IMG/VR virus record: IMGVR_UViG_3300042502_001233
Location: 186,001-250,000 of that record
DNA: 64,000 nt
Reading direction: 5' to 3' (one strand)
Below, one piece after another: positions 40,012-56,526 of the stretch. The position numbers were made by a program, and so were the translations under genes. The notes beneath the pieces are model-generated. The model was not told where the DNA came from and searched no databases. It saw nothing but the letters and a program-made list of their open reading frames with translations. The number at the start of each line of letters is the position of its first letter. Within the stretch, counting starts at the first letter, position 1.

Positions 40012-40408
40012 GTGTTTTAATATTATAATTCAATATTAGGTCTTTTTCATATAATTTTTCTTCAACGTCACCTATAGGTTCGCCAAATCTAAAACATAGC
40101 CTTGTCTCTGGGTAAGCATCGTATGCGTTTATATTTTCCCAAGCCAAAGCTATAACACCGTCAACAGCGTCCCAAACAGCAAACGTATCACTGTTTTGAA
40201 CAACATCCAAATTCAAATCTGATTCAAGTCTTCCAACTTTTTTTATGAATTTATCATGTGGTGCTTCTGGTCTCCCAGACGCTGGGAATGTATCCCATTC
40301 TTCACCGTCAATGTCTTTTGTGGTATCAGAAAAAATAAACTCGTAGATAAAGTTACCTTTGTAATCTTTACCTACTCTGTTTACATATATCAAATACATT
40401 TTATTCAT
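39998..40408 (-). CDS. Hypothetical protein
   Basis: 136-aa ORF. Confidence 0.7.
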   Translation of the reverse strand: MNKMYLIYVNRVGKDYKGNFIYEFIFSDTTKDIDGEEWDTFPASGRPEAPHDKFIKKVGRLESDLNLDVVQNSDTFAVWDAVDGVIALAWENINAYDAYPETRLCFRFGEPIGDVEEKLYEKDLILNYNIKTHEQK

Positions 40409-42204
40409 TATTTTTTAGCTTTTGGGTCTGGTTGAGTTTCAATTTCTGGCAAGAATGTTTTTTGTCTTCTTGTCGGTTGAACTGGTTGAGTTTCCGCTGG
40501 TTTTGTTTTTGGACCAGCTGGTAATGTTTGTGGTTCTGCGTTGTTCATATTATCTTGATTTAAACTTTCGTGTAATTTATTTAACAATGTTGTTTTGTCA
40601 AATATACTAAATTTATTTGGATTTATCAAGTTTTCTTCAACTATTTTAGAAACTGGTTTCTTAGACCACATTTTACATGACCAATATTTAGGTTTTGTTC
40701 TGTCTTTAGCTTGAGCACATTTATGTCTAGCTCTAAAAGATTTTCTTCTTTTTGGGTCATCTCTTTTAATTTCCATATTAGGGTCACCAAAATTAACTTT
40801 GACTATATTACCTTTTTTGTTTCTAACATAAACTTTAAATTTTTTAACGTCACCTTTCATTGGTTTACCTAATGGTTTCCCATCATATTTTCCTTCAGCC
40901 ACCATACGTTCAACATTACCATATTCATCTTCATAACCACCTTCAGTATCACCATCATAAGCGTTTAATGTGTTAGCTAGGAAATGGTAAACTTCTTCCA
41001 TATCATCATTAGCTGTTGCGATGTGGTCCAAGGCCCAACCGTGTCCGTTTGAAAGTATCCTATCTACCATAGAGTTATCCATTTCTAACAATTCACCAGA
41101 TGCATGTGCAATGGTTTTAAGGCTAGACCAAAACATATAATTGTTTGTTTCACCCATATCACCTTCCATCATGTTACCAGTTTCCATATTTCCTTCCAAG
41201 AAATGATAAACTTCTTCAATATCATCTTTTGATGTGATAACGTGTTCTAGAGCCCATTGATGACCATCAGCAATTAAATTATCAACACCTAACTTATCCA
41301 TATTCAACATTTCTATAGCGTCATCATGAATACCTTTAAGGTTTAACCAAAACATATAGTTGTTTGACTCACCTTCATTTTCTTCAGTTAATTTATCCCA
41401 TTGTTTTTTATCTGGATAGTCTTCATCGCCTGGTTTTGCTGGTGACTCACCTCTTTCTTTTTTAGCACGAATGTTGGCCCATAAACCTTCTGATTCTTCA
41501 TTAACTGGAACACAATTAGGGACTTCTTTACCGTTTTTTTCTTTCATCCCAACTTGTTTGTATCCTTTCCAACAAGCTTCAGTTAGTCTATTTTCTTCCA
41601 TAAACTCTGGACTATCTTCAGGTGCGAAAATGCTCATTCTTTTTGGGTTTTCCAAAAAGAAATCTTCATTCTCATAAATTTGGTAACTGTTTTCTCCAAG
41701 GTCTTCTTCATCTGATGAAAAGTCAAAATCATCATCACCAGCAGCCCCGTCATCGGGTCCACCTTGAGTATCGTCTCCAAAATCGGTGCTATCCTGATTA
41801 TCCGAACCAGAATCTTGTGCGTCATCTTTACCAGCGCTATTAATTTTCTTAATTATATCTTTTCTGTCGTTTTCATCCATTTCAGATGTGTGAGTAGCAG
41901 ATATCACCGAGTTTATTGCAAACTTCTCTAAATCAAAATCTGGTTGACCAGATTCATCGGAATAGCTTCTTAATGACTGACCTAATTTACCACTCAATTG
42001 TTCAATGAATTTCTTTGGGTCTGTTTCTTCATCAGCGTCAACACCCGCATCAAATGGTTCTTTGTCAAATGGTGCATCGTCTGCTGGAGCAGCTTCTTCC
42101 TCACCACCAAAATCACCAAAACCAGCGTCATCAGCTGGTTCTGTCATGGGTTCAGCTGGAGCGGGTGCAGGCGCAGCGGGTGCTGCTGGTGCAGGTTTAT
42201 CCAA
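40408..42204 (-). CDS. Large acidic multi-module protein, probably the -1 frameshift extension of the upstream ORF
   Basis: The only start is a TTG with no obvious initiation context, while the frame stays open up to the A10 run (KKTLNEAKKYTLKLDKPAP). Contains a duplicated NNYMFW...GHxWALxH module. Confidence 0.7.
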   Translation of the reverse strand: MDKPAPAAPAAPAPAPAEPMTEPADDAGFGDFGGEEEAAPADDAPFDKEPFDAGVDADEETDPKKFIEQLSGKLGQSLRSYSDESGQPDFDLEKFAINSVISATHTSEMDENDRKDIIKKINSAGKDDAQDSGSDNQDSTDFGDDTQGGPDDGAAGDDDFDFSSDEEDLGENSYQIYENEDFFLENPKRMSIFAPEDSPEFMEENRLTEACWKGYKQVGMKEKNGKEVPNCVPVNEESEGLWANIRAKKERGESPAKPGDEDYPDKKQWDKLTEENEGESNNYMFWLNLKGIHDDAIEMLNMDKLGVDNLIADGHQWALEHVITSKDDIEEVYHFLEGNMETGNMMEGDMGETNNYMFWSSLKTIAHASGELLEMDNSMVDRILSNGHGWALDHIATANDDMEEVYHFLANTLNAYDGDTEGGYEDEYGNVERMVAEGKYDGKPLGKPMKGDVKKFKVYVRNKKGNIVKVNFGDPNMEIKRDDPKRRKSFRARHKCAQAKDRTKPKYWSCKMWSKKPVSKIVEENLINPNKFSIFDKTTLLNKLHESLNQDNMNNAEPQTLPAGPKTKPAETQPVQPTRRQKTFLPEIETQPDPKAKK

Positions 42205-42230: not shown

Positions 42231-43466
42231 TTAAAGTTTTTTTTTTAAATCAGCTATAGCTTCTTTTATTTCTTCAAGAGTTAATGCTTCATCCATAGCG
42301 TCATTTTTAGTCGCACCAGCGATTTTATCAGCGTATGTGATTTTATCTTTAGGTTCAGCCAAAGCAGCAAATTCTTTATCTTCATCTGACATTTCTTCAT
42401 TAATATCTGGATATTGTTTGTTGAAATAATCTCTAGCTTTATCCATACCAGTAGACAATTTTTGAGAAATAACATTTTTAAAATCTCTACCAGCATCACC
42501 TAATAATTGAAGTAATTCAGCAGCAGACATATTGTCTAATCTATTCATCAATTCATCATTCGACATGTTATCATCATTTACCATGTTACCTTCTCCGTAC
42601 ATGTCTTCTTCCATGTAACTTTCGTCATACATGTCTTCTTCCATATAACTTTCGTCATTTCTTAATTTAGAAAAATCATCCCCATCAAGTTTGCCGTTAC
42701 GATTCATATCAAGTTTATATTGGTTTCCACGCAATTCTTCATCAACTGGTATCTCCAATTCGCTTGGTGGGTTTGGTATTTGGTCTTCAGCATCGGTTCT
42801 ATAAAAATCATTACCGTTATCTTCTATCATTTTGTCAATGTATTGTTCTTCTTCAGACATTTCCATATCATCACCAAACATACCTTCATCAACAAATCCG
42901 TTACCTGACATTTCAGCAAATCCAGCCCAACCTTCATCAATTTTTTTAACTTTTTCAAATTCTTTTGCTGTTTTACCTTTAGCAACATTGTCACCAAATC
43001 CGTCTTCCTCAGAACCTTCTTTAGCTTCTTGTTTTAACTCAGAACCTTTTTTGTCTACAATGTGTTTAGATGCAAAGTTTTCTTCGTTCAACAAATCATC
43101 GTCTTCAAATACGTTGATGTTACTATCTGTACCATAAGCTTCTGCCAAAGATTTAAACGTTAAGTTTAAATGTTTAGTTGCTTTAGCGTATGATGGATAA
43201 GCTTCTTTCTTTTTGTTTTGCAAACCACCAATGTATTTAAAATCTTCAGTTACAAGTTTTGAAGTTTTATCTGATACTTTGATGTAATATTCGTGATTTT
43301 CTCTAACAATAGCATAAGCTTTACCGTCAGGACCCATTTTAGTCAATTCAATAACTGAACGAGAAACATTTTCGTTGATAGGTGTAATACCCATAAGTTG
43401 CTTCATACGTTCATTGATTTCGTTTCCTTTTAAACCAACTGGGTTAATTTTAAAATCTTTTTTCAT
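42231..43466 (-). CDS. Acidic hypothetical protein ending at a slippery site
   Basis: Ends GAT TTA AAA AAA AAA CTT TAA; internal DESYMEEDMY duplication. Confidence 0.75.
   Translation of the reverse strand: MKKDFKINPVGLKGNEINERMKQLMGITPINENVSRSVIELTKMGPDGKAYAIVRENHEYYIKVSDKTSKLVTEDFKYIGGLQNKKKEAYPSYAKATKHLNLTFKSLAEAYGTDSNINVFEDDDLLNEENFASKHIVDKKGSELKQEAKEGSEEDGFGDNVAKGKTAKEFEKVKKIDEGWAGFAEMSGNGFVDEGMFGDDMEMSEEEQYIDKMIEDNGNDFYRTDAEDQIPNPPSELEIPVDEELRGNQYKLDMNRNGKLDGDDFSKLRNDESYMEEDMYDESYMEEDMYGEGNMVNDDNMSNDELMNRLDNMSAAELLQLLGDAGRDFKNVISQKLSTGMDKARDYFNKQYPDINEEMSDEDKEFAALAEPKDKITYADKIAGATKNDAMDEALTLEEIKEAIADLKKKL
42237..42246 (-). other. A10 putative -1 frameshift/transcriptional slippage site
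   Basis: T TTA AAA and A AAA AAA heptamers two codons before the stop; the -1 frame is open for about 610 codons. Confidence 0.6.
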
Positions 43467-51931: not shown

Positions 51932-53593
51932 ATGGAAGATTTAAAAAAATTCATGGATGACACTGTTAAATGTGAAATTCTAAAATACGCTAGTTATGAC
52001 GATAAAAATGGTGGTATTGCTAAACCAGAATATAAATTTACTGTTCTAATCAGAACGCTAAATTTTGAAAATAAAACTAATAATGATATAAAATTAATTA
52101 TTGATGAGGCTGGTTTGTTATTAAATTACGATAATTGTCATGTTTCAATGTTTTCTATCGGTAAACTAAACGGAGAAGTTTTTTCAGTTAATGAAACTGA
52201 TGATGACTTTGCTGTCTTAGATAAACATTTAAGTGATGGTAAAACAATTGTTTTATATTCTGCTAAAATTGATACTGGAAAAGTGTATTACAGATATTCT
52301 TTGGTTAAAGATAAACCATTAAATAGAATGGAAGAAATTAAAAAAAGAGTTGATAAATCAGATAATGTTTTATTATTTGATAAACACGAATTAGAGTCTT
52401 TAAAAAAGATTACTAAAACAACCAAAATATCTGATTATGAAGTTTTAACTGATGATGGTTTTGTTGACATAGAGGCATTACACGAAACAATACCGTATGA
52501 AGTATATCATCTAAAATTAAAAGACGGTAAAGAACTTAAATGTGCTGATAATCATATTGTATTCGTTAGTGAATACCATGAAACTACTTTTGAACCAATT
52601 GGTTTAACCGAAATATTTGTTAAAAATTTAGAAATAGGTTCGTTTGTTATGGTGTCTGATGATAACGGTAATCTAACAGAATCTGAAGTTGTTGAACTTA
52701 CGAATTTAGGTTATGAAGAAGTAATGTATGACCTTGAACTAAAAGAAGGTTCCAATAGACGATATTATACCAATGGTATTTTATCACATAATACGATGTT
52801 GGCTAAATTGTTAGCAGAAGAAGTATTTGGTGATGCTGATTCATTGTTTAGAATCGATATGTCTGAGTATATGGAGAAATTCTCTGTGTCGAGATTGGTT
52901 GGTCCACCTCCTGGATATGTTGGGTATGAACAAGGTGGTCAATTGACTGAGAAAGTTCGTAGAAAACCACACTGTGTTGTTTTGTTTGATGAGATTGAAA
53001 AAGCTCATGAAGATGTATTCAACTTGTTATTACAAATGCTAGATGAAGGTCATTTGACTGACGGATTAGGTCGTAAAGTTAATTTCAAAAATGCTCTTAT
53101 TATCATGACATCTAACATTGGTGTTAAAGAAGCAAACTCATTTGGTAAGACAATGGGTCTTGAGACACCAAACGGAATGTTAAATGAAGAAAACAAAGCG
53201 CGCGCTATTATCGAAAAAGCTCTTAAAAAGAAATTCAAACCAGAGTTCTTAAACCGTATCGATGAAGCAATTATCTTCAACAGCCTTAAACGCGAAGACA
53301 TCCACGAAATCATCAACGTTGAGTTTGAAAAACTTAGAAAAAGAGTTGTTGAAATGGGTTACGATTTAACCATTGAACAAGCAGCGTTAGATTTCTTGGC
53401 AGAACATGGATACGATGAAGAATACGGAGCTAGACCTCTTACCAGAACACTTCAACATTATGTAGAAGATACGGTGGCTGATGAAATTTTGGCTGACCAT
53501 ATTGTCGAAGGACAAACCATCAATATCGTTTATGATAAAGATAACGATACATTGATTGTAAAACAACCAAAAACACCCAAACCAAAAAAATAA
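51932..53593 (+). CDS. clpC: Split-intein C fragment fused to the C-terminal half of ClpC
   Basis: ...YYTNGILSHN|TMLAKLL..., RIDMSEYMEK, GPPPGYVGYEQGGQLTE, LFDEIEKAH, TSNIG, PEFLNRID and YGARPL. Confidence 0.93.
   Translation: MEDLKKFMDDTVKCEILKYASYDDKNGGIAKPEYKFTVLIRTLNFENKTNNDIKLIIDEAGLLLNYDNCHVSMFSIGKLNGEVFSVNETDDDFAVLDKHLSDGKTIVLYSAKIDTGKVYYRYSLVKDKPLNRMEEIKKRVDKSDNVLLFDKHELESLKKITKTTKISDYEVLTDDGFVDIEALHETIPYEVYHLKLKDGKELKCADNHIVFVSEYHETTFEPIGLTEIFVKNLEIGSFVMVSDDNGNLTESEVVELTNLGYEEVMYDLELKEGSNRRYYTNGILSHNTMLAKLLAEEVFGDADSLFRIDMSEYMEKFSVSRLVGPPPGYVGYEQGGQLTEKVRRKPHCVVLFDEIEKAHEDVFNLLLQMLDEGHLTDGLGRKVNFKNALIIMTSNIGVKEANSFGKTMGLETPNGMLNEENKARAIIEKALKKKFKPEFLNRIDEAIIFNSLKREDIHEIINVEFEKLRKRVVEMGYDLTIEQAALDFLAEHGYDEEYGARPLTRTLQHYVEDTVADEILADHIVEGQTINIVYDKDNDTLIVKQPKTPKPKK
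52328..52792 (+). mobile_element. Split intein C fragment (about 155 aa from the internal Met133)
   Basis: VLTDDGF, ELKCADNHIVF (block B, with a CxxH variant of TxxH), MYDLEL (block F) and SHN|T (block G). Confidence 0.85.
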
Positions 53594-54180: not shown

Positions 54181-55024
54181 TACAAGAACACTACTAAGAG
54201 AAGAAATTGCCTTAAACGATAGAAAATTGCTATTGAATGAGCACTCTATGTCATTGATACAAAATAGCGAGTATATAAAACATGTTTTGGGTATTCAGAC
54301 ACCATTGTTTGAGTATTATTCTTTTGAACTTAGAAAACAAATAATTGACGAAGCTTTATCAATACAAGGTGTTTTACAATCAGCTAACAGCTATTTAGTT
54401 GGTCAGATTGAAAAAGGTAAAGAATATGTTGTAAAAGCTATTGATACCGTTAAATCAACTAAAGATATTGTAATATTATTTAAAAATTTAATTTTATCAC
54501 CAGAAAATATGGTTAAAGCCAATAGAGGGTTAAATAAAATATGTACAGATTTAACAAATGATGCTCAATCTGTAATTACCTATATAACTGAAAAATTACC
54601 TAATATAGTTAACTTTACCGAAGGAATGGTAAATATGTTAAACAAATTAAAAAGAATTGTAACTGACGAAATAAACGGTAACGGTTGGACAGGTTTTCTA
54701 GCTAAATTTGGTCTTGCATGTTTAATGACTTACATTAAAATAAATGTATTTGATAAAATACTTAAATTAGGTATTCAGTTTATTAAAGATGGTGCAGTAC
54801 TTTTCACAGGGGTTCAAGGGTTGCTTCAATTGTTTAAAAATTTTAAAGAAACAATAATTCAAAATGGTGATATAAAACAAATAATAAATTGGATAACCAA
54901 CATAGGTAAAGAAGCCGCATCATTAAATTTAAGTTTAGCGTTTGATATAATGGTAGCAGTAACAACCGTTTGCACAGCTTTGTTAGCCGTTATTAATTTC
55001 AAATTTGATTTGAGAAAACAATAA
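54173..55024 (+). CDS. Hypothetical protein with a tag-like N terminus
   Basis: MNNTRTLLREEI...LLLNE. Confidence 0.65.
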   Translation: MNNTRTLLREEIALNDRKLLLNEHSMSLIQNSEYIKHVLGIQTPLFEYYSFELRKQIIDEALSIQGVLQSANSYLVGQIEKGKEYVVKAIDTVKSTKDIVILFKNLILSPENMVKANRGLNKICTDLTNDAQSVITYITEKLPNIVNFTEGMVNMLNKLKRIVTDEINGNGWTGFLAKFGLACLMTYIKINVFDKILKLGIQFIKDGAVLFTGVQGLLQLFKNFKETIIQNGDIKQIINWITNIGKEAASLNLSLAFDIMVAVTTVCTALLAVINFKFDLRKQ

Positions 55025-55036
55025 AATAAATATATT

Positions 55037-55345
55037 ATGAAAAATACAATCAAAGGTGGTAAAGCAGATAAAATGACACCACAAGACATCGCAAATAAAT
55101 TCAAAGTATCAGTTTCTGATATTGAAGCTCAATTAAAAAAAGGTATTGAGGTTGAGTTAGAACATACTGATAATAAAGAAAAAGCTAGAGAAATAGCTAT
55201 GGACCATTTGTCAGAATTTCCAGATTACTACGATAGACTTGAAAAAATGGAAAATAACCCTTCTAAAGAATTTAAAACAACTGAAATAAACGAGAACAAC
55301 AAAATATTAATTAAACGTCTCATAAAAGAGAATTTAAACAAATAA
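55037..55345 (+). CDS. DUF5661-like small phage protein
   Basis: LKKGIEVELEHT...AREIAMDHL.E.PDYY..L..ME; C-terminal KILIKRLIKE. Confidence 0.7.
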   Translation: MKNTIKGGKADKMTPQDIANKFKVSVSDIEAQLKKGIEVELEHTDNKEKAREIAMDHLSEFPDYYDRLEKMENNPSKEFKTTEINENNKILIKRLIKENLNK

Positions 55346-55350
55346 AAAAC

Positions 55351-55779
55351 CTATAATGGGTCATCTTTTTTACCAATATATTCATAACTAAAACACAACC
55401 TTTTATTATCGTAAACATGGTCTTTGTATGTGTTGGCAGAACTTACATCTTTTCTTAATTTTTTATTTTTGCTGGTAGGTTTCCAAAGTGGTGAATTCTC
55501 CCAGAAAGCACCCAATCTAGGGTGAGCAGTCCTTGAAAAATATCTGTAACCTTGGTCAATATGATGCTGTGCGATAGCAGTAGAAAATCTAACACCAATA
55601 CCCATCCCTTGAAAATCTGGTAATACAACATTCCTGTGTCCTCTCCATGCATTTTTTAAAGTACCGCTAGGCATTGATATACTAGCGAAAAAACTAACTA
55701 CTTGGTCACCCCAAACACCAATGTAGCATCTAGAAGCTTTGTTTACGTTTCCGTCTAAATAGTGATGGTCTTTAAACAT
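55351..55779 (-). CDS. GNAT acetyltransferase domain (frame open upstream to the T9 run at 55842)
   Basis: FKDHHYL, RNVVLPDFQGMGIG (acetyl-CoA binding) and RTAHP. Confidence 0.8.
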   Translation of the reverse strand: MFKDHHYLDGNVNKASRCYIGVWGDQVVSFFASISMPSGTLKNAWRGHRNVVLPDFQGMGIGVRFSTAIAQHHIDQGYRYFSRTAHPRLGAFWENSPLWKPTSKNKKLRKDVSSANTYKDHVYDNKRLCFSYEYIGKKDDPL

Positions 55780-56444
55780 TCGCCAACTATCATTTGTTGT
55801 GCGATATATTTTGAGAGTGATTTCTGGTCGGACAAAAAAAAACCGTGAAGTAATTCACCTGTATCTGTATTGATAACCCAATCTGGTTCTAACCAATCTA
55901 TAATATCAGAATGACATGTGGATATAACCACATTCTCCAAACCGTTTTTATCTATATATCTTGACAAAGCAACACTGGCCGCTTTAGCCACGTTTCTATC
56001 AACCACACTGGTGTATTCATCAATAACACAATTGGATTTTAATTTACGAGCTAAATCAGCTCTAAACTTCTCACCGTTAGACAACACATGGTAAGGTTTA
56101 TACCAAGAAGGTATTGTGTTTAAACCAACAGCGGTTAGTTTATTTATACCATCATCTGGTGATTCAAAATGCGATACTATGGATTTGTTTGGGTCCCATG
56201 TTGGTGTTTCTTCAACACCAAAATTTTTAAGAAGTGTTGATTTACCAGAACCACTGGAACCAACGATTACACCCAACTTGAATTTTGTTGGTAATTTGGT
56301 TGGAACTTTCCACGGGTAAAATTTTGAGATTCCATCGAATTTACAATCAAACGCTGTTTCACTGGCTTCAATATATTCGTCACGGTCCACACTTGAAGTA
56401 AGAGGTGTGGTTTCTCTTTTTAATTTTTGTATTAATTTTTCCAT
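55755..56444 (-). CDS. ABC-type ATPase domain, joined to GNAT by a -1 frameshift
   Basis: GSSGSGKST, LSNGEKFRA, IDEYTS and STCH; the tail after GFF looks like out-of-frame translation. Confidence 0.85.
   Translation of the reverse strand: MEKLIQKLKRETTPLTSSVDRDEYIEASETAFDCKFDGISKFYPWKVPTKLPTKFKLGVIVGSSGSGKSTLLKNFGVEETPTWDPNKSIVSHFESPDDGINKLTAVGLNTIPSWYKPYHVLSNGEKFRADLARKLKSNCVIDEYTSVVDRNVAKAASVALSRYIDKNGLENVVISTCHSDIIDWLEPDWVINTDTGELLHGFFLSDQKSLSKYIAQQMIVGECLKTITI
55834..55842 (-). other. U9 putative -1 frameshift/slippage site
   Basis: CAC GGT TTT TTT TTG; the -1 frame reads ...VRPEITLKIYRTTNDSWRMFKDHHYL. Confidence 0.65.
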
Positions 56445-56490
56445 GATTTGAAACATTTATAAATAAATATCTCGTTATCATAAAAAAATA

Positions 56491-56526
56491 AAAGACTAAG
56501 GTGATTATTCAATCACCTTAGTCTTT
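56491..56526. terminator. 16-bp perfect hairpin (terminator-like)
   Basis: AAAGACTAAGGTGATT-ATTC-AATCACCTTAGTCTTT. Confidence 0.75.

Follow-up and report, generated by a model that had tools for sequence, protein, structure and literature searches.

In a 64,000-nucleotide stretch of a giant lake-water phage (positions 186,001 to 250,000 of the IMG/VR record IMGVR_UViG_3300042502_001233, hereafter the window), the minus strand carries an ORF for an ABC-type ATPase that overlaps a second frame encoding a GNAT acetyltransferase domain. The ATPase ORF (0 frame) extends from an ATG at 56444 to a TAG at 55757-55755 and encodes 229 aa; an alternative upstream ATG is present at 56456. It contains the Walker A motif GSSGSGKST (56261-56235), the signature LSNGEK (56084-56067), the Walker B motif VIDEYT (56027-56010) and the H-loop TCHSD (55919-55905), and it matched Pfam ABC_tran with E=2e-5 (25.6 bits against a cut-off of 25). 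The GNAT frame (-1 frame) is closed by a TGA at 55857-55855, which fixes the earliest point at which a shift can occur, four codons upstream of a run of exactly nine T's (T9; 55842-55834 on the minus strand, A9 on the plus strand). From the run the -1 frame (55351-55842) stays open until the stop at 55353-55351, reading FFFVRPEITLKIYRTTNDSWRMFKDHHYL into a GNAT domain with the acyl-CoA pyrophosphate-binding loop QGMGIG at 55611-55594. The 0-frame codons across the run are CAC GGT TTT TTT TTG TCC, which form two overlapping in-frame heptamers, T_TTT_TTT (55842-55836) and T_TTT_TTG (55839-55833). Only a -1 shift, or one extra U, at this run joins the two frames, giving 203 + 161 = 364 aa, as the first-pass annotation had proposed.

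The two ORFs map to adjoining halves of a single phage family profile of unknown function, phrog_11143 (357 positions): the ATPase ORF matched positions 11-194 (E=9e-60) and the -1 frame positions 200-353 (E=3e-39), while the fused relative L027 matched positions 9-354 (E=9e-109). Acetyltransf_1 scored 17.8 bits in the window, below the cut-off of 20.7, but 27.6-30.6 bits in the fused relatives L022 and L027. In the AlphaFold model of the fused relative (pLDDT 91.5) the N domain is predicted to fold like ABC transporter nucleotide-binding domains, with MalK, Wzt, HrtA and similar proteins as top hits, and the C-terminal part gave fold matches to the GNATs 1y9k and 2ae6; a sequence search of solved structures with the fused relative gave no hit. 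After GFF the 0 frame runs on for 26 codons (LSDQKS...KTITI*), which match nothing in distant relatives, and its stop arises from the HHYL codons of the other frame. The AlphaFold model of the 229-aa product, built from a shallow alignment, assigned this tail a pLDDT below 50, giving no structural support for a folded tail.

The T9 run is not an assembly slip, since contigs of three independent lake DNA runs (X3, X4 and X6) covered it with 0 differences and 0 gaps. Exactly nine T's were present in 26 of 26 distinct T-run relatives found by protein search, at 60-82% protein identity, even though the flanking codons vary freely at synonymous sites. The same length was found in 57 of 58 viral contigs and in 101 of 102 metagenome contigs, the latter with 90 distinct flanks; the remaining contig of each set has T10 and is fused in frame, and no T7, T8 or T11 allele was found. 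The split clade is monophyletic (99/95) and nested among relatives fused in frame, with tip-to-tip distances of several tenths of a substitution per site. Two basal lineages of this clade (the L032 group and L105) replace T9 with A_AAT_TTT in the correct frame (GGA AAT TTT, with only 4-5 T's) and still need -1. Neither of the observations that the first-pass annotation considered incompatible with its reading was made: the contigs show T9 rather than T10, and close homologues keep both the split and the slippery run instead of being uniformly fused.

The region read in two frames (55755-55833) encodes the 0-frame tail and, in the -1 frame, VRPEITLKIYRTTNDSWRMFKDHHYL, the first strand and helix of the GNAT fold. 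Simple counts of synonymous and nonsynonymous changes in this overlap did not favour either frame. However, synonymous diversity falls from about 0.48 to 0.21 exactly between the slip site and the 0-frame stop (0.47 upstream and 0.49 downstream), the lowest 26-codon block elsewhere being 0.416. With amino-acid composition controlled the expected value is 0.445, and 0 of 5000 resamples were as low. These data indicate that both frames are constrained.

Together, these results led us to propose, with a probability of about 0.8, that this is one gene with two products, generated by programmed -1 recoding at the U9 run. Standard decoding would give the 229-aa ATPase with its short tail, whereas in a fraction of events the reading frame would move back by one at GGU UUU UUU UUG, producing a 364-aa ATPase-GNAT fusion, the ancestral architecture of the family. 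Slippage would set the ratio of ATPase alone to fusion, as suggested in the first-pass annotation. We infer that ABC domains, which act as dimers, would form mixed dimers carrying fewer GNAT than ATPase domains.

Which machine slips is unresolved, and in the absence of RNA evidence we lean only slightly to RNA-polymerase slippage as the main route in this phage; the only metatranscriptome contig near the site (run X22) belongs to a relative of about 92% identity and ends at 55819, before the run. In this tentative view one extra U is added on the nine-T template and ordinary translation of U10 transcripts makes the fusion, a ribosomal -1 slip on the same heptamers being a lesser or back-up route. 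Bacterial RNA polymerase slips efficiently in vivo on runs of nine A or T, while U_UUU_UUU is a weak ribosomal shift site in E. coli (PMC5009743). Moreover, all nine T's are constrained, including the Gly third base and the ninth T, although a single heptamer needs only seven to eight, and the two T10 lineages keep the alternative-frame tail open and alike, a tail that a -1 slip from T10 cannot reach. Programmed ribosomal frameshifting as the main or only route, giving a low, fixed share of the fusion, is only somewhat less likely. Every split lineage of the clade has a canonical X_XXY_YYZ heptamer in the 0 frame inside the narrow permitted interval (19-73 nt across lineages), against a background of about 1.3% per codon, and polymerase slippage does not explain the A_AAT_TTT lineages. 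Homologues in firmicute phages also need -1 at the same domain junction without long homopolymers, two of them at A_AAA_AAG (Enterococcus phage 9184) or A_AAG_GGC (Oenococcus phage unk162). With ribosomal frameshifting, one mechanism would cover the whole family. On the other hand, no stimulatory element was found: RNAalifold on 30 sequences (-30 to +130 around the site) gave a consensus energy of -1.25 kcal/mol with no compensatory pairs, the single-sequence fold was not better than shuffles (z-score -1.4), a possible pairing of GGUUUUU with the downstream AAAGACC is not kept in the A_AAT_TTT lineages, and the upstream GGN GAR codons vary freely, leaving no conserved Shine-Dalgarno-like sequence.

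Explanations without recoding appear unlikely. Phase variation of the DNA between T9 (ATPase only) and T10 (fusion) would account for the T10 alleles, which occur in two lineages nested inside the T9 clade; however, the near uniformity of T9 is not the scatter of a hypervariable tract, the three independent samples of this phage all gave T9, the GNAT half is under purifying selection in T9 lineages (synonymous diversity of 0.49 with the protein conserved), and the A_AAT_TTT lineages cannot phase-vary yet are still split. It is similarly doubtful that the GNAT is a separate protein, associated non-covalently with the ATPase, and started at the first ATG of its frame (55779-55777, the Met of WRMF), perhaps by translational coupling to the ATPase stop 20 nt downstream. 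This codon (TTG in one lineage) is kept in 28 of 28 clade members, annotators of related phages call two genes, and the relatives L100 and L101 have an in-frame TAA between the domains. Even so, the 19 codons between the run and that ATG encode, in the -1 frame, residues invariant across the whole family, namely Arg-Pro (55830-55825), Trp and the beta-1 strand pattern. There is no ATG, GTG or TTG between the TGA and the Arg-Pro codons, and no usable Shine-Dalgarno spacing is visible. In the model of L022 a strand at 212-216 is followed by a helix at 218-223, with the Met at 223, implying that a GNAT begun there would lack strand beta-1 and the start of helix alpha-1. Least likely is a homopolymer miscall of a true T10 or a recently broken gene. 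Although homopolymers are classic error sites and single-base indels the commonest way genes break, independent assemblies agree, about 90 distinct related sequences share T9, both halves are intact and conserved across the clade, and in 80 genome loci the family is almost never frameshifted outside it.

The arrangement recalls Shigella mxiE, in which one extra U in some transcripts at a run of about nine T's probably fuses two overlapping frames into a longer, active protein, the unshifted product being short (PMC5009743); mxiE, however, is a bacterial regulator, and here some relatives have replaced the run with a short ribosomal-type heptamer and the overlap shows dual-frame constraint. In dnaX an ATPase gene also gives two products in a set ratio that share the N-terminal ATPase and differ at the C-terminus, through a -1 ribosomal frameshift at A_AAA_AAG in E. 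coli or RNA-polymerase slippage on a run of nine in Thermus thermophilus (PMC5009743). The T9 and A_AAT_TTT/A_AAA_AAG lineages suggest a comparable use of either route, but in dnaX recoding makes the shorter product and here the longer one. The phage tail assembly chaperone G/GT frameshift likewise uses a slippery heptamer without a strong stimulator to make a C-terminal extension in a fixed minority, and is conserved across very divergent phages; it concerns an assembly chaperone rather than an enzyme, and many members of the present family are simply fused in frame. Well-supported recoding sites in phages outside the tail-chaperone genes are few, and our literature searches and two recoding surveys gave no description of this frameshift, which is not proof that none exists. 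The occurrence of T9, T10 and A_AAT_TTT alleles within one clade offers a natural comparison of the two mechanisms. In many deposited phage genomes the family is split into 'ABC transporter' plus 'hypothetical protein' or 'acetyltransferase', records that recognition of the fusion corrects.

With respect to function, the same two-domain architecture, in the same family, has been predicted to acylate a DNA base (Iyer et al. 2013, PMC3763556, as cited in PMC7824862, which names Tenacibaculum phage pT24). The nucleic-acid-modifying role proposed in the first-pass annotation agrees with this prediction, and we infer that the enzyme may use ATP and an acyl-CoA to acylate a nucleic-acid base. That work appears to describe the architecture and a predicted role, not a frameshift; pT24 is a hit at 38-40% identity and its gene carries an in-frame TGA instead. 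This TGA and the TAA of L100/L101 were the only internal in-frame stops, most others called being alignments that ran past natural ends. The comparison with TmcA made in the first-pass annotation is an analogy only, and that with Mom is unresolved. TmcA couples an NTPase to a GNAT that acetylates a nucleic-acid base, but its NTPase is a helicase-type domain accompanied by dedicated tRNA-binding domains, and Pfam scans of both window ORFs (E up to 1) and of four fused relatives listed only ABC_tran, generic AAA families and Acetyltransf_1/7. PMC7824862 treats Mom and the ABC plus GNAT system as separate.

A more speculative possibility is that the boundary between the ATPase and GNAT domains is a recurrent, selected recoding site in this phage family. 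Unrelated groups (freshwater jumbo phages; Enterococcus, Oenococcus, Streptococcus and Thomasclavelia phages) would each have split the ancestral fusion by -1, expressing it through different slippery sequences, with ribosomal heptamers and polymerase-slippage runs interchanging within a single clade. The unshifted product would carry a short tail that is itself under selection, and the frameshift would set the subunit ratio of a mixed ATPase/ATPase-GNAT complex that acylates phage DNA.

Firmicute-phage homologues have a ParB/Srx-like gene just upstream, but this genome has no ParB_N match and the neighbours here (DUF5661, an RNaseH-like protein and an LRR protein) are uninformative. Of 41 runs of nine or more A/T, only the T9 site and an A10 run on the minus strand at 42246-42237 of the window bridge two long ORFs. 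The latter, noted in the first-pass annotation as a second homopolymer site, likewise needs -1 and is conserved in a relative of 73% identity, in line with polymerase slippage. Other runs of nine A/T lie in frame inside ORFs of this genome, so such runs are not reserved for recoding, and an A10 at genome position 143672 is just an A-rich leader before a start codon.

Bases 186001-250000 of a 362,018-base virus record from IMG/VR (31% G+C) belong to a jumbo phage whose sequence recurs in many lake-water metagenomes. On the minus strand, an ORF running from the ATG at 56444 (another ATG lies at 56456) to the TAG at 55757-55755 encodes 229 residues and carries all the ABC ATPase motifs, namely GSSGSGKST, LSNGEK, VIDEYT and TCHSD. 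At codons 201-204 this ORF reads GGT TTT TTT TTG, the T run being exactly nine nucleotides long (55842-55834). The -1 frame is closed by a TGA four codons before the run; it then stays open for 163 codons to the stop at 55353-55351, reading FFFVRPEITLKIYRTTNDSWRMFKDHHYL and on into a GNAT domain with the QGMGIG acyl-CoA loop. A -1 shift, or one extra T, gives 203 + 161 = 364 residues, in agreement with the fusion of about 364 residues proposed in the first-pass annotation. The first canonical start in the GNAT frame is the Met of WRMF, located 19 codons after the run.

Contigs from three independent DNA metagenome runs (X3, 55509-56245; X4, 54800-56515; X6, 55736-56440) covered the T9 run with no difference and no gap, although minority alleles could not be seen because these runs were examined as assemblies. 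The metatranscriptome contig near the site belongs to a relative and ends at 55819. Of note, the same lake samples contained short contigs (runs X3, X6 and the run designated X22; 55820-55934 and 55598-55822) of relatives 85-92% identical to this gene, implying that several strains or species of this phage group coexist.

Both ORFs matched the same PHROG family, phrog_11143, the ATPase at profile positions 11-194 and the -1 frame at positions 200-353. A tblastn search against deposited phages found both halves side by side in about 60 genomes, most of them in one frame, as in Aeromonas PX29, Vibrio VmeM-32, Nonlabens P12024S, Gordonia Jace and Burkholderia phiE255 gp29. Among 80 loci from bacterial and archaeal assemblies, 79 showed no frameshift between the domains. 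The single -1 case, a 71%-identical copy with the T9 site on a 103-kb contig labelled MAG Methanobacterium sp. (PLXT01000052.1; locus L141), groups inside the jumbo-phage clade, and this contig is probably phage DNA binned with an archaeon. An AlphaFold model of the closest naturally fused relative (locus L022, 362 aa, 80% identical in the ATPase part) had a mean pLDDT of 91.5; its N half matched ABC transporter nucleotide-binding domains and its C half matched small GNATs. In that model the segment between the slip site and the Met forms a strand (212-216) and a helix (218-223), and therefore a GNAT started at the Met would lack its first strand.

A protein-based scan of IMG/VR gave 45 loci. 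Among relatives of 60-82% identity, 26 distinct sequences keep exactly GGT TTT TTT TTG and need -1, while the neighbouring codons vary freely at third positions. Two lineages (L022; L027/L028) have T10 and are fused in frame. Two others (L032/33/36/108; L105) have GGA AAT TTT followed by T or A; their T run is only 4-5 nucleotides long, yet they still need -1. In these lineages A_AAT_TTT is a canonical X_XXY_YYZ heptamer in the correct frame, and it sits inside a permitted window of about 22-46 nt between the -1-frame stop and the invariant Arg-Pro codons. A DNA pattern allowing T7 to T11 found 58 viral contigs, 57 with T9 and one with T10, and 102 metagenome contigs, 101 with T9 and one with T10, and no T7, T8 or T11 appeared; the two collections overlap in origin, so the counts are not additive. 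In distant fused relatives the equivalent residues form a variable linker (RGSLH, RSVQR, GLVRR and others) before an invariant Arg-Pro, indicating that the protein sequence of the family does not demand Gly-Phe-Phe-Phe.

A maximum-likelihood tree of 47 sequences, from which the junction residues were left out, placed all split sequences (27 T9, 2 A_AAT_TTT and 2 T10) in one clade with 99/95 support, nested among in-frame fused relatives. The T10 forms lie deep inside the T9 clade, whereas the A_AAT_TTT forms lie near its base. The need for -1 therefore arose once and has been kept through substantial divergence, with at least one exchange of slippery sequence.

To explore the constraint acting on the two frames, we counted for each codon column the share of sequence pairs with the same amino acid but different codons. 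This share was 0.47 across the ATPase, 0.10 at the slip codons, 0.21 over codons +1 to +26 (from the run to the 0-frame stop) and 0.49 afterwards, the recovery beginning right after the 0-frame stop; no other 26-codon block fell below 0.416. Resampling columns of matching amino acids from the rest of the gene gave an expectation of 0.445, and none of 5000 draws was as low as 0.205. This is the signature of a second constraint on the overlap, either selection on the 26-residue tail of the unshifted product or an RNA element; however, no conserved RNA structure was found, and the tail was not confidently folded in a model. Within the overlap, the -1 frame keeps the invariant residues of the family (Arg and Pro in 28 of 28 sequences, and Trp in 28 of 28). 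It has no start codon of its own, so it must be reached from the ATPase frame.

All five firmicute-phage loci that we inspected also need -1 at the same domain junction; the deposited genomes annotate the family as two genes ("ABC transporter" plus "hypothetical" or "GNAT"). Enterococcus phage 9184 has A_AAA_AAG, the only in-frame heptamer in its 211-codon ORF, and Oenococcus phage unk162 has A_AAG_GGC, whereas Streptococcus phages phiGBSVK-E1 and MismyG share the non-canonical G_GTT_TTT and Thomasclavelia phage TR-TP1 has only a G5 run. In-frame heptamers occur at about 1.3% per codon in these genes; finding them in three of six independent split lineages is suggestive rather than decisive. 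One GC-rich contig (L046) is split by -1 with no slippery sequence, and another (L049) is +1 inside the ATPase and looks broken. In loci L092 and L099 about 627 nt lie between the ATPase and GNAT halves, which are also in different frames; this may be an inserted small gene or mobile element. Tenacibaculum phage pT24 has an in-frame TGA (about 2636-2638) inside the GNAT domain, at a position that is Gly, Ala or Ser in relatives, and loci L100/L101 have an in-frame TAA between the two domains; these could be nonsense mutations, readthrough or sequencing errors.

Slippage of the RNA polymerase and -1 frameshifting by the ribosome would give the same protein. In favor of polymerase slippage, all nine T's are constrained although one heptamer needs fewer, and the T10 lineages keep the alternative-frame tail, which a ribosomal -1 slip from T10 could not reach. 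Furthermore, runs of nine A or T cause efficient slippage by bacterial RNA polymerase, whereas U_UUU_UUU is a weak ribosomal site in E. coli (PMC5009743). The same genome also has a second -1 junction at an A10 run on the minus strand (42237-42246), between ORFs 43466..42231 and 42204..40408. There, the 411-aa ORF ends two codons after TTA AAA AAA AAA, while the -1 frame opens just before the run and continues FKKKTLNEAKKYTLKLDKPAPAAP... for about 600 codons of an acidic, low-complexity protein. The run and both frames are kept in a relative of 73% identity (L131/L132), with synonymous changes nearby, and this is the only other run of nine or more A/T in the 362-kb genome that bridges two long ORFs. 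On the other hand, the A_AAT_TTT lineages and the firmicute heptamers have no long run, and ribosomal frameshifting as a single mechanism would then cover the family. Taken together, these data lead us to favor, only tentatively (a probability of about 0.45), polymerase slippage as the main route in this phage, with the ribosome as a possible and only somewhat less likely alternative. Both programmed -1 recoding and the ABC+GNAT architecture are already known; we found no description of recoding in this family in the literature searched.

Regarding function, a comparative review of jumbo phages states that a GNAT coupled to an ABC ATPase was predicted to carry out an uncharacterised acyl modification of a DNA base, and names Tenacibaculum phage pT24 (PMC7824862), which is a homologue here. 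The genomic context in small phages fits nucleic-acid metabolism. A ParB/Srx-like gene, sometimes annotated as a DNA modification methylase, lies just upstream in the Streptococcus and Oenococcus phages, and DNA polymerase and exonuclease genes are neighbours in the Thomasclavelia and Enterococcus phages. In Streptococcus phage MismyG the ParB/Srx-like gene overlaps the start of the ATPase gene and an ASCH-domain gene lies just downstream of the GNAT (401-922 and 2017-2385, respectively), a possible functional neighbourhood for a nucleic-acid acyl mark. Even though the first-pass annotation had likened this kind of architecture to TmcA, the protein is not a TmcA member, as no helicase-type or tRNA-binding domains were found. 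Since ABC domains act as dimers, we infer that a mix of ATPase-alone and fusion would give complexes with fewer GNAT than ATPase domains. No ParB_N gene was detected in this genome and the neighbours of the ATPase-GNAT gene were uninformative. At 51932-53593, on the plus strand, we identified a ClpB-like AAA+ protein (AAA_2 and ClpB_D2-small domains) with a weak intein-splicing match at residues 132-287, ahead of the ATPase core.
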